The notes under the pieces are model-generated. The model searched no databases. It was not told the DNA's origin and was given only the letters and a program-made list of their open reading frames with translations. Position numbers and translations under genes: made by a program. This document shows, one piece after another, positions 39,672-45,758 of a stretch of DNA of 64,000 nt. Origin of the DNA: Hyaloraphidium curvatum SAG 235-1 (lineage: Eukaryota > Fungi > Monoblepharomycota). Numbering within the stretch: position 1 is the stretch's first letter; the number at the start of each line of letters is the position of its first letter. Location: assembly GCA_025558095.1 (NCBI GenBank), contig JAIVFI010000038.1, positions 452,612-516,611 on the forward strand. Reading direction: 5' to 3'.

Positions 39672-40498
39672 CTAACCCTCAGTTCGAAAGGTCACGTCAA
39701 AATGTCGCATCTCGATTTGAAAGTGCCGGATTGATGATCTTGGGATGCGGAACAAGCAAAGGCACGCGGTATCCGTGGTCAAAGGCGGGATGTCCGGTCG
39801 TCCCATCGGACACGAATCGTTCCGGTGGACGCCCGGCAGGTAGTTTCTCGGCAGCTCTAAAAAGGAGAAATCTGCTGTCGACGCCCGTGGCCGGCTCTTT
39901 GACAGTGATTCGGGGGTTATCACAATCGTTGGAAGCACCCGACGACTCTGCGACTCTCTGTCGCCACCGTAATTGTACAGGTTGATTTTCGTCAAAGCAG
40001 GACAGCCCCGCGCGAATGATTCGCAGGCGCAACGGAGCAGTTCGTCGGCAACGTCGGCGTAAATGGTCAGGTTCTCCAGGGCGGGAAACCGGCACGGAAA
40101 AGAGCTAGGTTCCGGCCCCTTGAACTCCGTGCTTCCGAAGTCGATGGTCACCTCCTTCAAGCTCGGCCACTCCAGAGAGGCGAAGAGATAGAACGGAACC
40201 GTCGTGGGGCCATAGATCCTCGCGTCTGTGATATGGGGAGCCAGCGCCCCTGCCAGACCCGAGTTCCACAGCCAGGAAGCTTCATTCTCCTTGTCATTGA
40301 CCACGAAGATGCGGCACATGCTGAACTTGTTGGCCCCGCCGGAATCCATCGCGAAGTTCTTCATGCCAGAGCCCGACCCCAAGAACGCCGACCACTCCTT
40401 GCCATCCGGTTCGTCGGTGCGCATTAAGTGACCAAGCAACCGCGTCACGAAGTACGGGAGCAAAAGCGCGTGCACCGCGCGCGATGCGAAGGCCATCT
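39672..40498 (-). CDS. hypothetical RNI-like/LRR-like protein, possibly 5'-truncated F-box family member
   Basis: WPSLKEVTIDF, FPALENLTIY, CPALTKINLY repeats; start uncertain. Confidence 0.45.
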
Positions 40499-40705
40499 CG
40501 CGGTGGGTCTGGATGGGCGACGCGAGCGCCACGGCGAGAAGAGAAGCAGCTCCGGAATCAGGCCGGGAGCCGGATCTTCTTCTTCTCCGGCGTCCATTTC
40601 GTCGCCGCGTGGCTCCATCTCGCGCTTTGCAGATCGGCCCTCGAGCGCGGAGTGTTGGCAGGTGTGTGATCGATGTTTCCACGGAAACCAACGTCCCCCT
40701 CGGCA

Positions 40706-42181
40706 ATGGACGGCGCGGCGGTGATCGACGTGCCCCGCAAGAACGGGCCGTGGAGCGACGTGGCGTGGCTCGGCCTCCTCCCGGGAGAACTGACCCGGGA
40801 CGGCGGAGCCCCGTGGGCAGCCGTGCCTCCCGACCCGGCGCGAGCGGGGCGCGACGCGGACCCGCTCTCGCCCGAACGCGTGGCGCAGGTGCTCTCCGAC
40901 GCCGGGTCGCCGGCGCTGGGCGCCTTTATGGCCTTCCGCATGCGCGCTCTGGCCCGCGCGTCGCTATGGCAGTTCGCACTCTGGTTCTCAATGGCCACGT
41001 TCGCATCCCCGCTCTTGGCCGTGCCTTTTGTCGTAGGCACATACTCGTCGCGGGCACTGGGCACTGTTGTTGCCTCATTTCTCTGGTCGACCATGGCGTG
41101 GTTCGTCGTCAACGCGTTCGGCACGCGGGTTAACTCGGGCCACAGGGATCTCGCGTTCGAGCAGTTCGTGCGCTACGCTCTGTTGCTCGCGACGAATTCG
41201 TCGGACACGGATTCGCTCGTGGAGCACTGGGAGAGGGATTCACGTTGTCCCTGCCCCGCCCCGACGTGCCTTGGCCGGTTTCGGACAACTTTCGCTCGCT
41301 CTCTTGTTGTCCGCACAGTGTACACGTTTGCTTGCCTTTGGACGGCGTACACTTTTCTTGCCTTTTACACCCAGCTGGTGACGCTGGCGGGGTACACATG
41401 GACGCATGCGTGGAGTCTAGCTTTCGCCGTGCTCGGTCTGCTCGCACGGACCATGTGGTACATCGCGGGCGCGCTCGTATTGCCGATGAGCATGAACGCC
41501 GCTCTGCTGGACGTCTCCAGTCGGCTCGAGGTCCGAGCGTTCGATGTTTCGCTGGGCCAACTTGTGGAGTCGGCGGCAGCCGCAGTCTCCTCATTCGGAG
41601 CCGAACGGGAAGCAGCTCAAGAACCTACGTCCCTACCCTCCATTGCCGCCGGCCCGTACTGGATCGTGCACGACGCTCTGGCCCCACGAATGCGCACCAG
41701 GTTCGCCGAATTCCGCCCGAACAGCCACCTCGTGCTCGCTGGCATCGCCATCGAGCTGATATCGGGCTTCATCTACGCCGTCGGCTCCTCCTGTCTGCCC
41801 GCCTGGGTGCTCATGTCCGTCGCCACGTGGATCTCGTTCGCCCTCTCGGACCTCGTCACCGTCGCCCGCGCCAACGCCCGCGCCGGGGCCGTCGCGGACC
41901 TGCACCGCGCCGCCGCCGCCGACCTGCACCGCCTCGTGCTCTCCCTCCCCCCTACGGAGCTTGCGGCCCCGCTCCGCAGGCAGCTCCTGGACCGCGAGTC
42001 CGCGCTCGCCTCCGTGGCGGGCGAGGCGGAGCACATGCGGGCCAGGTTCGCGGGGTTGGTCGTGGACACGGGGGTCGTGAGGACCGTGCTTGCGACGGGG
42101 CTGACGGTGGGGGTGGCGCTGTTTGGGATAGTGAGGGGGTCGGTGGCGGTGACGCTGGAGAGCGTGTGCAACACGGCGTGA
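40706..42181 (+). CDS. 7-TM membrane protein, gustatory-receptor-like (7TMIC) candidate, copy 1, intronless
   Basis: About 7 hydrophobic segments; loop motif H-x6-CPCPAPTC; post-TM6 VARANA; terminal ARFAGLVVDTGVVRTVLATGLTVGVALFGIVRG. Confidence 0.7.
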   Translation: MDGAAVIDVPRKNGPWSDVAWLGLLPGELTRDGGAPWAAVPPDPARAGRDADPLSPERVAQVLSDAGSPALGAFMAFRMRALARASLWQFALWFSMATFASPLLAVPFVVGTYSSRALGTVVASFLWSTMAWFVVNAFGTRVNSGHRDLAFEQFVRYALLLATNSSDTDSLVEHWERDSRCPCPAPTCLGRFRTTFARSLVVRTVYTFACLWTAYTFLAFYTQLVTLAGYTWTHAWSLAFAVLGLLARTMWYIAGALVLPMSMNAALLDVSSRLEVRAFDVSLGQLVESAAAAVSSFGAEREAAQEPTSLPSIAAGPYWIVHDALAPRMRTRFAEFRPNSHLVLAGIAIELISGFIYAVGSSCLPAWVLMSVATWISFALSDLVTVARANARAGAVADLHRAAAADLHRLVLSLPPTELAAPLRRQLLDRESALASVAGEAEHMRARFAGLVVDTGVVRTVLATGLTVGVALFGIVRGSVAVTLESVCNTA

Positions 42182-42457
42182 AGTTCGATTGGAGAAGTCC
42201 GTTGCGGACTTGTTCCCGAGCCGCATCCGATGTCGGCCCTTTCATGATTGTACTCCTCACCGCAATTCGATCCATTTGTCGTCTCTGTCCGATCGCTCGA
42301 TGGAATATGCACGTTCCAGCAGACTGCGGCGGGGCCAAGGGCGGGGCTAGCGTCAGGGCCCGTGTCGCTCTCCGCCCTACAAACCTCGCCGCCCTGGCGA
42401 TCGCGCAGGACTTCGGGAGCCGTCTGCGAAGTGGCTTCAAGCGTCGCGATCGTGGCA

Positions 42458-43918
42458 ATGGGAAACGAACCGGACGCGGCCGCGCCTGCCCTCGCGCCGG
42501 GCAAACGTGCCGCGCTCGCGTTCTCGGCACCGGAGCTCCTCGCCATCTTCCCCGCCCCGCTGCCCGACCCGGATGCGCCGCGCCTCGCTGCTGACGACGA
42601 GGCGGCCGACCCCGCTTTGCAGATCCGCGAGGCGGCGCCGCTCTCGAAAGACGCGTTTTTTGCGCTGCTCAAGAACCACGGCGCGGCCAGATGGGCGGCC
42701 GCCCTGCACCTGTGGTTCCGCCCGTTTTTCGCGCGCTTCGCCGCGATGACCGTGCCAATCATGCTGTTGACGGCCGCGATGACGGCCCCGCTGTGGCTGT
42801 TCAACGGGACGCAGCTCCTCTTTTCCGCCCGCTCGCTTGCCATCGCAACCACGGTGCAGGCTGCGTACTCGGGCTTGTTAATTCCCGGACTGGTCTTTAC
42901 TACGTGGTCTGCGCGCGGGATAGCAGGAGTGCACCGGACGCGAGTCAACGAGGATTTTTCCGGGCACGTCTACGGTGGCGTCGCGCGCTGGGCCCAGCTC
43001 TGCGCGGAAGGCAGGTCGAGGCTGATTCAGCACGACGGCGGGGACCCTCTGTGCCCGTGCAGCTCGCCTTCCTGCGCATTGCGTTCGGCCGATACGGCTG
43101 CAATGACGGCTCTCTTCCTGAATTCTGTCTTCTCGTGCTTCGAGTCGTTCGTCTTCTTCGCGCAGACTTGGACGGCAACGGTGACCTTTGCTCCCAGAAC
43201 CTTTGCCAGCCCTTGGAGCACAGTTCTTGCCGTATTCAACATTGCCGCTATCTCCATCTACCAACTTGTGCGCATTCCCGCTGACCTCGTTCAGAACCCA
43301 CCACTCGACCTCGCCAAGCGAATCCGCCACCGCGCTGTCCTCATGCTGATGCAGGATGTGGTCGCGCGACGCGATTCACTGTCCCTGCCGGCCTCCACCG
43401 AACCCTATGTTGCCTTCCACTATTCCTTGTCTACGGCATGGGCTTCGAACCTCGCTCGCTTCCATGGCGGCTCTGGCTTTGTCTTGTTTGTGGCCGGCTT
43501 TTGCTTGGCCAACTGCATAGTCATGGCCGCTGCGGACGGCTGCATCCCTCTCGCTTGGCCTCTCCTCCTGCTCGAAGTTCTCGCGTCCTCCACGCTTCGC
43601 ATGATCTTTCTGACCGCTTCTTGGAACGCCGGAATCTCTTCCATCCGCGCACTGTACAGTTCCGCCGCGACCCAGCTCCTCAAGCGCGAGACCGACCCCG
43701 CCTTGGGCTCCCCTGCACGGACGCACGCGGAGCTGCTCCGCGCGTTCGCGGCCGACGACATGCGCGGGAAATGGCTGGGCATACCCGTGGATTACTCCGT
43801 GGCAAGGACGGTGGCCGTGACGGGGGTCACCGTGGTCCTGGGGCTGTGGACGGTGGTCAGGGGGGCTGGCGTGGTTTTCACGATCCAGAACGTCTGCGGT
43901 GGGATCCCTGTAGATTGA
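42458..43918 (+). CDS. 7-TM membrane protein, gustatory-receptor-like candidate, copy 2 (tandem paralog), intronless
   Basis: Same layout; H-x6-CPCSSPSC; GCIP..W; TASWNAG; GKWLGIPVDYSVARTVAVTGVTVVLGLWTVVRG..VFTIQNVC. Confidence 0.7.
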   Translation: MGNEPDAAAPALAPGKRAALAFSAPELLAIFPAPLPDPDAPRLAADDEAADPALQIREAAPLSKDAFFALLKNHGAARWAAALHLWFRPFFARFAAMTVPIMLLTAAMTAPLWLFNGTQLLFSARSLAIATTVQAAYSGLLIPGLVFTTWSARGIAGVHRTRVNEDFSGHVYGGVARWAQLCAEGRSRLIQHDGGDPLCPCSSPSCALRSADTAAMTALFLNSVFSCFESFVFFAQTWTATVTFAPRTFASPWSTVLAVFNIAAISIYQLVRIPADLVQNPPLDLAKRIRHRAVLMLMQDVVARRDSLSLPASTEPYVAFHYSLSTAWASNLARFHGGSGFVLFVAGFCLANCIVMAAADGCIPLAWPLLLLEVLASSTLRMIFLTASWNAGISSIRALYSSAATQLLKRETDPALGSPARTHAELLRAFAADDMRGKWLGIPVDYSVARTVAVTGVTVVLGLWTVVRGAGVVFTIQNVCGGIPVD

Positions 43919-44165
43919 GACGGTGTTGCCAAAGTCTTGCTGTTACTGTGTCGATTTCCAAAACAGAGCGATCGGTCCCAATGATTTCATGCACGCGGCT
44001 CCCCTTCTATGATTATGCCCTAAAGTACAGCTGCAACCCCCGCCCGGCCATCCGCCGGGCCCGTTATAGATATCCTTTGCGATGGAATGCTGGAATCTGG
44101 AGGCACGATCAGCTCCCGACGGTTGCCCCACGGCCGCGGCACCGTACCGACAATCTGGTAGCCCA

Positions 44166-45758
44166 TCACCCGAAGCACACGCTCCTCGCCGCGCACGAGC
44201 CCTGGAAGCAGCACCCGCTCTCGGGGCACTGGTCGAACGTCGACGCGGTGCAGCCGCCGCCAGTGCCGCCGGGCGCGGGCGCGCCGGCGCACTGCGGCGC
44301 GCCGGGGCCGAAGCACTGCTCGCAGGGCGCGCAGGCGCCGCCGATGCAGCAGCCGGTGGGGCACTGGTCGACGGTGGAGGCGGTGCAGGAGCCGCCGGTG
44401 CCCGAGCTGCCCGAGCCGCCGCCCGAGGAGCCGGAGCACTGCGGGGCGCCGGGGCCGAAGCACGAAGCGCAGGGAGCGCAGGTGCCGCCGATGCAGCAGC
44501 CGCTGGAGGGGCACTGATCGAAAGTCGAGGCGGAGCAGGAGCCGCCCGAGCCGCCGCCCGAGGGGGGCGGCGGAGGGGGAGCGCCGGAGCACTGCGGGGA
44601 GCCGGCGCCGTAGCACGAAGCGCAGGGCTCTGGAAGAAGGAGGGCAGGGTGAGGAGAGAGGACGGATGGAGGCGCGCCAAAGACACCCACGGCAAGATCC
44701 GCCGATGCAGCAACCGGTCGAGCACTGGTCAAAGGTCGAGGCGGTGCAGCTACCCGAGCCACCCGACGAGCCACCGCCGCCCGACGGCGGCGGCGGCGGC
44801 GGGGGCGGGGGGGGCGCGGAGCCGCCGGCGCAGTTGATGGTGATCCAGTCGACCTGCATCCTGTAGTCCGGGTTGTACTCGTTGCTCCAGTCTGTCGGGC
44901 CGCCGGACCAGGCGACGGTGCCGGGAGGCGTGCCGACGCCGGCGTCCCACAGGTCGAAGACGATCTTGGCGGGCCTGTCGGGGAAGCGCGAGCCCATGTC
45001 GCCGCGGTACAGCATGCGGACGGTGTTGCCGTTGATCTTCCAGGCGATGTAGTCGGAGGTGCGCTCCACGCAGACGGTCTGGACCTCGTTGAAGGCGTCG
45101 CCGTGGCCGTGGTACTGGCCGTTGACGCCGTAGATGGCGTAGCCCTGCGAGAAGTAGTTGGTCTGGACCTCGAAGACGTTGCGGCCGACCCATTCGAAGT
45201 CGATCTCGTCGTCGATGTCTGGGCGGGGGATCGCGGGCACCGTCAGCTGAGGAACGCAAGGGCGCCGGGCGCGGGGGGAGGGGGGACCCACCCTGGCCGG
45301 GCACGTAGGAGGCGATGAAGATGGCCGAGACGACGCCGCCGCCGCGACCGATGCGGACGCCCGTGCAGATCTCGCCGAACTGCCACCACCTGGGAAGGAG
45401 AAGGGCGGCGATCAGCGTCCGAGTGGGGATCAGGCGGCGGGGCGGCGCACCTGGTCCAGGTCACGGCCGACTCCTTGCCGCGGGGGTTCCCGTGGCGGCG
45501 CAGGTCCATCTCGAGGAAGCCGTTGGCAACGAAGGCATCCGAGCCGAACTCGTCGACCCAGCCCGCCGAGTTGGGGTCGCCGTTCCAGTTGTAGGCGTTC
45601 ACGACGTTGTTGTAGTTGAAGTCGTCGCGGTAGAATCCCGAGCACACGCCCTGCGCGGACAGCGGCGAGCGCAGCGTCGACGGGAGGTCGCGTGCCTGTG
45701 CGGGCACGGCGGCGGCGAGGGCCAGGACGGCCGCGGCCGCGGAGGCAAGGAGGCGCAT
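44166..45758 (-). CDS. secreted GH16 (Crh/Utr2- or laminarinase-like) with four C-terminal Cys-rich repeats, 3 introns
   Basis: Signal MRLLASAAAAVLALAAA; GGGVVSAIF; DEIDFEWVG (ExDxE); VQTNYF; IAWKING; VAWSGG; repeats CTASTFDQC..GCCIGG.C. Confidence 0.88.

Follow-up and report, generated by a model that had tools for sequence, protein, structure and literature searches.

In this study, two adjacent genes were found in the window, that is, the whole stretch of DNA analysed, which is the final 64 kb of contig C38 of Hyaloraphidium curvatum. This species is an aquatic, chytrid-grade monoblepharid fungus of the Monoblepharidomycetes, and its assembly comprises 31.9 Mb in 55 contigs. Both genes belong to a large family of membrane proteins, put at roughly 300-450 genes by the combined search counts, and the proteins of this family probably adopt the fold of the seven-transmembrane ion channels (7TMICs), the architecture of the odorant receptors (ORs) and the gustatory receptors (GRs) of insects. 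An original prediction, made from the nucleotide sequence alone, had described the pair as two intronless, divergent paralogs of about 490 amino acids (aa) from a lineage-expanded family in a fungus. This description was borne out for the host, for the gene structure and, as set out below, for the expansion.

The two genes correspond to two open reading frames (ORFs) of the + strand, at 40673-42181 and 42248-43918, and are arranged as follows:

40706..42181, + strand: gene 1, 491 aa plus stop; intronless family member with a full-length match to the family profile
42182..42457, no strand: intergenic spacer of 276 bp; nothing else was found inside
42458..43918, + strand: gene 2, 486 aa plus stop, read from the first ATG; deeply diverged second family member

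The reading frame of gene 1 has a further in-frame ATG upstream, at 40673. The ATG at 40706 is probably the start, because the alignment with the annotated paralog P0002 (71% identical) begins at residue 12 of the longer reading frame. With either start, exact look-up found no identical annotated protein for gene 1, and gene 2 encodes exactly the annotated protein P0027. The family profile aligned over the full length of each gene in a single frame, and both genes are therefore intronless. The third codon positions were much richer in GC (GC3 0.82 in gene 1 and 0.77 in gene 2) than the second positions (GC2 0.53-0.54), and dN/dS was 0.31 when gene 1 was compared with the paralog of 71% identity, which indicated that both genes are real and under constraint. 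The two products shared 28% identity over 356 aa (BLASTP E 1e-18), with an overall range of 24-28%. The pair had been described as a tandem pair, which holds in that the paralogs are adjacent. A recent tandem duplication was rejected, however, because the two genes fall in separate subclades, each well supported, and the patristic distance between them is that of the family median. Beyond gene 1 and gene 2, the family profile detected no more copies or relics in the 64 kb of the window.

Fold and membrane topology

Both proteins were modelled with AlphaFold2 (AF2) without templates from an alignment of 45 paralogs; the gene 2 model and its alignment were built without the initial Met. The models reached pLDDT 89.7 and pTM 0.87 for gene 1, and pLDDT 88.6 and pTM 0.88 for gene 2. 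In structure searches with both models, the solved 7TMICs, including MhOR5, BmGr9 and Orco, were the top-ranked fold, as the original prediction had anticipated. The top ranks for both paralogs were filled by all of the solved 7TMIC clusters and by these alone, with coverage of more than 80% of the target chains. After these came unrelated helical proteins, in which at most 185 residues were aligned and only the cytosolic bundle was covered. The first Foldseek ranks were held by BmGr9, Gr64a, AgamOR28 and MhOR5, with probabilities up to 1.0. Moreover, a shape search of the ESM Atlas returned unnamed cnidarian and echinoderm clusters with TM-scores (model/match) of 0.56/0.67 and 0.57/0.65. Furthermore, language-model features, which use only the sequence, placed DUF3537, 7tm_7, Trehalose_recp, nematode SRR and GUR-5 among the nearest named clusters for both proteins. 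Beyond the fold itself, it is likely that the family is a true member of the 7TMIC superfamily.

The topology was deduced for the family average and for the two proteins. Seven hydrophobic segments, where about seven had been predicted, were present in the family-averaged hydropathy and coincided with the helices S1-S7b in both AF2 models. Lysine plus arginine (K+R) residues averaged 36.3 per protein over the 45 members on the side of the N-terminus and the long loops, compared with 0.9 on the short-loop side; the corresponding counts were 28 and 0 for gene 1, and 28 and 1 for gene 2. The loop totals were 313 and 32 residues, respectively. By the positive-inside rule, this distribution places the N-terminus inside and the C-terminus outside, in agreement with the predicted N-inside arrangement of seven transmembrane (TM) helices. 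The intracellular loops (ILs) are long, with mean lengths of 72 aa for IL1, 71 aa for IL2 and 64 aa for IL3, and the extracellular loops (ELs) are very short, with 4 aa for EL1, 8 aa for EL2, 4 aa for EL3 and about 15-16 aa for the tail.

DSSP assignments on the models placed S4 with its extension at residues 235-258 and 265-303, S5 at 318-361, S6 at 366-413 (48 aa), S7a at 418-443 and S7b at 455-477. In both models, TM6 runs through 45-48 residues as one continuous helix, and in TM4 and TM5 a short break is followed by long helical cytosolic extensions. TM7 is modelled in both proteins as an acidic cytosolic helix 7a, a short linker with a conserved G-x-x-V-D, and a hydrophobic helix 7b. In addition, region 253-455 of gene 1 was aligned to four-helix bundles in the structure search. 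The predicted elements of TM7 are as follows:

41957..42034, + strand: TM7a of gene 1, residues 418-443; acidic, non-hydrophobic cytosolic helix, predicted from DSSP and hydropathy to be part of an anchor-like four-helix bundle
42068..42136, + strand: TM7b of gene 1, residues 455-477; candidate pore-lining helix with R459 and T460/T464/T467 on one face
43793..43864, + strand: TM7b of gene 2, residues 446-469

All of the topological features by which 7TMICs are recognised in the field (PMC9998090) were thus found, in part as predicted by the models: seven TM helices, an N-terminus inside, short ELs, long TM4-TM6 helices and a split TM7.

Signature residues and cysteine/histidine elements

Conservation was assessed on the 45 aligned paralogs and motif counts were made on 198 family sequences, with the numbering of gene 1. 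All of the motifs listed in the original prediction were present in both genes at the predicted positions. The motif H-x6-CPC-x4-C reads HWERDSRCPCPAPTC in gene 1 and HDGGDPLCPCSSPSC in gene 2. Both genes also carry C-[LI]-P before TM6, A-x-x-N in TM6, a terminal T-x-x-x-V-C, and the extended pattern G-x-x-V-D-x-x-V-x-R-T...T...T...L-[FW]-x-x-V-R-G at TM7. H174, C181, C183, C188, C363, N390, R459 and T467 were invariant, and C488, D178, W232, W236, R273, R277, G450 and T464 were conserved in at least 90% of the paralogs. Because these residues are invariant across 45 paralogs, the motifs are family signatures and not products of chance. H-x6-C-x-C-x4-C was found in about 79% of the sampled members, with the middle Pro in 87% of the 45 aligned sequences.

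TM7b was the most conserved TM helix, with a column identity of 0.476 compared with 0.16-0.25 in the other TM helices, and it had the lowest dN/dS (0.10). By analogy, such strong conservation is what would be expected of a pore helix. The outer end of TM7b carries a conserved R477-G-G.

Two elements of Cys and His residues are private to the family. Their positions are as follows:

41225..41269, + strand: gene 1 H174-x6-C181-P-C183-x4-C188 in IL1 (between TM2 and TM3), on the K/R-rich side; candidate cytosolic Zn site, invariant in 45 of 45 paralogs
43031..43075, + strand: gene 2 H192-x6-C-P-C-x4-C206 in IL1; pLDDT 84-91 in the model
41792..41800, + strand: gene 1 C363-L-P in the 4-residue EL3 before TM6; invariant, proposed disulfide partner of C488
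42167..42169, + strand: gene 1 C488, in the C-terminal tail, which is short and extracellular
43541..43549, + strand: gene 2 C362-I-P in EL3; its proposed partner is C480 at 43895-43897

The His/Cys cluster had been predicted to be cytosolic and the two lone conserved cysteines extracellular, and the topology from the K+R distribution puts them on these sides. The His-Cys3 cluster of IL1 is probably a structural Zn site or knuckle on the cytosolic, reducing side, which is suggested by the fixed spacing, the invariance of all four ligands and the cytosolic location; S-acylation is an alternative role for these cysteines. The second element consists of one Cys in EL3 (1.0 per protein over the 45 members) and one in the C-terminal tail (0.98 per protein). 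C488 was found in 44 of the 45 paralogs (98%), and 187 of the 198 family sequences have a Cys among the last 9 residues. Since there is one Cys in each of these two segments and none in EL1 or EL2, and since residues 363-365 and 481-483 of gene 1 are both modelled by AF2 as short beta strands, the two cysteines probably form a disulfide that staples the tail. Zn binding and the disulfide are both well motivated in this sense.

Family size, spread and comparison with known systems

The size of the family was estimated by several searches. With gene 1 as the query, tblastn against the fungus's own genome gave 640 first-look candidates, and the 85 that were scored were mostly uninterrupted ORFs of about 500-600 aa. 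The profile of 45 paralogs gave 884 candidates in the same genome, of which 86 were scored, nearly all with E < 1e-100. An exhaustive HMMER search of 1.84 billion cluster representatives returned 467 matches at E 1e-3, 414 at 1e-10 and 299 at 1e-30. Furthermore, the codon pattern for H-x6-C-P-C-x4-C occurred at 260 genomic sites, compared with 3 for the reversed control.

Apart from the window's own gene, 23 of the 24 family copies with a readable source came from H. curvatum, where they are labelled "hypothetical protein". The remaining one was a cluster (P0142/P0154) from ENA, JGI and Logan metagenomes. This relative lies on contig Ga0480381_0040092 of JGI sample 3300043314 (L053:129-1205) and was also present in sample 3300050339, ENA and Logan. 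It retains the His/Cys motif, as HDSKDLLCPCPELAC, and the TM7b motif. Because this relative's identity to the H. curvatum copies nowhere exceeds 54% and the contig that carries it has 54% GC, the family is present in at least one other organism. The profile match of the metagenomic relative begins at position 153, right behind a stop, and the N-terminal part lies past an intron or the contig end; the neighbouring gene has a weak SNF2-related match. A word-index protein search returned 5 and 3 Hyaloraphidium proteins only; it was swamped by low-complexity words and gives no evidence of absence.

The members of the family are concentrated in the distal regions of contigs, as seen for the motif sites on contigs C1-C15. 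On nine contigs of known length, 71% of 69 motif sites lay within 200 kb of a contig end compared with 41% expected, and 90% lay within 300 kb compared with 62% expected. The Kolmogorov-Smirnov test gave a p value of 7e-9, which is optimistic because the motif sites are partly clustered. Several contigs have central deserts of 400-900 kb without family motif sites. No telomere repeats were present at the end shared by the window and the contig.

Other members occur in head-to-head or tandem pairs and in small clusters, for example at C14:38282-39790(-) / 40314-41822(+), C22:532816-535543, C9:734008-739157 and C12:60163-71450. A few copies contain single in-frame stops, such as C18:635016-636554 (TAG) and C28:112832-114286 (TGA). 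The in-frame stops, pairs and clusters are consistent with birth-and-death evolution. Between gene 1 (40706-42178) and its closest paralog (C22:593312-594787), synonymous divergence was 0.5-0.6 in the middle of the gene and 0.12-0.25 in the last third, and this fall suggests gene conversion of the 3' part. An isolated fragment at C40:468047-468292, within the 655-aa annotated protein P0005, is 70% identical to the last 82 residues.

The family was then compared with three groups of known proteins. Insect ORs and GRs, including MhOR5 (7LIC), AaegOR10 (8V00), AgamOR28, BmGr9, Gr43a, Gr64a and Orco (6C70), are 7TMIC ligand-gated cation channels. They share with the present family seven TM helices with the N-terminus inside, short ELs and long ILs, long TM4-TM6 helices, a split TM7 with TM7b as the most conserved part, and a large, fast-diverging, mostly single-exon repertoire that is partly arranged in small clusters. 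However, identity to these receptors is only 5-13%, there is no match to Pfam 7tm_6 or 7tm_7, and the motif (T/S)Yhhhhh(Q/K/E)(F/L/M) is missing. The family proteins are also about 100 residues longer, with a structured N-terminal region of 84-105 aa, an IL1 of 49-72 aa with the invariant His-Cys3, the conserved EL3-tail Cys pair, and a TM7b Arg that is invariant at the cytosolic end and 89% conserved at the extracellular end.

The gustatory receptor-like (GRL) proteins of unicellular organisms and the DUF3537 proteins of plants (Class-A) resemble the family in their occurrence outside animals, in topology and in the lack of most of the TM7 motif. Moreover, DUF3537 clusters were among the nearest language-model neighbours of the family, and a GRL host is also a chytrid-grade fungus. 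These groups have 1-12 members per genome, in contrast to the hundreds in Hyaloraphidium, and no match to the DUF3537 hidden Markov model (HMM) was obtained. Previous work has documented six GRLs in Thecamonas, 4-12 DUF3537 genes in plants and one GRL in Spizellomyces punctatus; fungal GRLs were single genes in two Spizellomyces species only, with small families elsewhere (Benton et al. 2020, PMC7746228). The third group, the PHTF-like Class-B 7TMICs, shares the core 7TMIC fold and, by published description, an elongated IL1 between TM2 and TM3. On the same basis, a comparison by description only, the IL1 of PHTF is much longer and there are one or two gene copies per genome in the species examined. 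The preprint that extended 7TMICs across life and described the Class-B members with their long IL1 covers fungi only as Chytridiomycota and Blastocladiomycota and mentions no expansion (Himmel et al. 2023, bioRxiv 10.1101/2023.08.30.555482). In the searchable PMC open-access and bioRxiv literature, no mention of this family or of a link between Hyaloraphidium and 7TMICs was found. Because the TM7 motif and Pfam membership are both lacking, the family was not filed as OR, GR or DUF3537 proper, but as a new variant of the 7TMIC architecture that has diverged strongly and expanded massively.

Functional readings and the neighbourhood of the pair

On balance, the two genes appear to encode subunits of a Hyaloraphidium-lineage family with the 7TMIC architecture known from insect ORs and GRs, a reading that is favoured with reasonable, not high, confidence. 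With the fold, topology, conservation pattern and expansion obtained in the present analysis, a mode of action may be proposed in which oligomerisation, ion conduction and ligand gating are well-motivated inferences. The cytosolic extensions of TM4-TM6 would bundle with TM7a into an anchor domain, through which, by analogy with the solved ORs and GRs, subunits would assemble into tetramers. The TM7b helices, with their invariant Arg and their Thr ladder, would line a central pore, and a small molecule, once bound, would cause each subunit's variable TM1-TM6 bundle to gate this pore. A function as ligand-gated channels can be put forward only tentatively from this analogy, and a role in environmental chemosensation is doubtful. 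The Arg residues at both mouths of TM7b raise the question of ion selectivity.

Several results weigh against this reading. Both AF2 models come from the same alignment and are hence not fully independent. In Foldseek, E-values were weak (0.01-0.5) and TM-scores were low (0.27-0.36), and the superpositions on solved 7TMICs had an rmsd of 5-6 Å. Pfam gave no match for either gene (E up to 1) or for the 45 members (E up to 10), so that no sequence-profile match to 7tm_6, 7tm_7, Trehalose_recp or DUF3537 was obtained. The family profile found no OR or GR among the PDB sequences, where its best match was noise (KCNQ1, E 0.15). Six-frame scans of the genome with PF12056 and PF08395 were empty, which is weak evidence as control genomes were equally silent. 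The animal TM7 motif was found in 0 of 198 family sequences in either strict or relaxed form, and the only reminiscence of it is the conserved Thr in TM7b; owing to this absence, the link to the insect receptors comes from the fold and the language-model features only. This motif is diagnostic for animal GRs and GRLs and is not definitive, since fungal GRLs and DUF3537 proteins are largely without it (PMC7746228). A G-x-x-x-D motif, which had been named as a known 7TMIC feature, did not turn up in the 7TMIC literature examined. The least conserved parts of the family are the inner-leaflet (cytosolic) halves of TM2-TM5 and IL2 (residues 130-140, 200-210, 240-255 and 295-340 of gene 1), with stronger conservation in the outer halves. 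From insect ORs and GRs, whose ligand pocket lies in the outer (extracellular) helix halves, the opposite would be expected. This weakens a simple reading as an external odorant pocket, and a ligand of the inner leaflet or the cytosol, or a function outside sensing, is conceivable. Furthermore, Hyaloraphidium is non-motile, and a chemotactic role is thus not obvious.

The same variability of the inner-leaflet halves and IL2 would fit proteins of the same fold, either of the 7TMIC superfamily or of a PHTF-like Class-B relative, that act in intracellular membranes or serve as fast-evolving contingency or recognition proteins near chromosome ends, with the variable part cytosolic or in the inner leaflet. 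The elongated IL1 as in Class-B 7TMICs and the enrichment in distal contig regions also point in this direction, and most non-insect 7TMICs are without known function (PMC9998090). However, the conserved Thr/Arg face of TM7b, together with the anchor-type bundle, matches the needs of a pore-forming tetramer, the paired extracellular cysteines argue for an oxidising compartment (although the lumen of the endoplasmic reticulum would also serve), and hundreds of genes with birth-and-death features parallel chemoreceptor repertoires. We consider this explanation unlikely, though a serious competitor of the receptor-like channel.

An unrelated, lineage-specific seven-TM family, whose resemblance to 7TMICs would be convergent or an artefact of predicted long-helix packing, is improbable. 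The low identity, the missing HMM link and TM7 motif and the high rmsd would all be expected of it, and both Benton and Himmel leave homology versus convergence open for divergent 7TMICs. On the other hand, the solved 7TMICs alone took the top ranks with both paralogs, although these share only 24-28% identity, with the next matches confined to the cytosolic bundle, the language-model features point to DUF3537, 7tm_7, SRR and GUR, and all the topological features used in the field were found. Finally, a G protein-coupled receptor (GPCR) with an extracellular N-terminus or a secondary transporter, which the seven hydrophobic segments and the presence of transporters among the weak Foldseek matches might suggest, is very improbable and was rejected, because the charge distribution puts the N-terminus and the long loops in the cytosol, no GPCR was among the top structural matches, and transporters reached TM-scores of only 0.07-0.16 with probabilities of at most 0.16, so that both scored well below the 7TMICs.

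If the 7TMIC fold is right, this repertoire would exceed by far all others known outside animals. The family would make up about 2-3% of the genes, would equal the OR plus GR repertoire of an insect in size and would be larger by a factor of 30-400 than those reported outside animals, where 7TMICs have so far been single genes or small families, none with a known function or ligand. It would show that huge expansions of the 7TMIC fold are not an animal invention. That a non-flagellated planktonic fungus independently built a 7TMIC repertoire of several hundred genes, with a Zn module and a location in distal chromosome regions, as an array of ligand-gated channels for sensing its chemical environment is a rather unlikely scenario; if it is true, the expansion of a chemoreceptor family was invented convergently in Fungi, and a tractable microbial system for 7TMIC biophysics would be at hand. 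Moreover, the family would provide natural variants in the hundreds, all from a microbe that can be cultured, for use in expression, ligand screening and cryo-electron microscopy, and would add structural elements that can be tested by mutation, namely the cytosolic His-Cys3 cluster and the extracellular Cys pair. In addition, it draws attention to about 0.5 Mb of coding sequence in Hyaloraphidium whose only label at present is "hypothetical protein".

The pair is flanked in the window by other ORFs. Upstream, a 344-aa ORF (39672-40706, - strand) adjoins gene 1 in divergent orientation and has no Pfam match. Between 43943 and 44837, overlapping Ala/Arg-rich ORFs on both strands are probably shadows of a GC-rich repeat. 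The ORF next to gene 2 on the downstream side (44020-45291, - strand) belongs to glycoside hydrolase family 16 (Pfam E 3e-16), and in it Cys/Gly/Ser-rich repeats come after the hydrolase match in the same frame.

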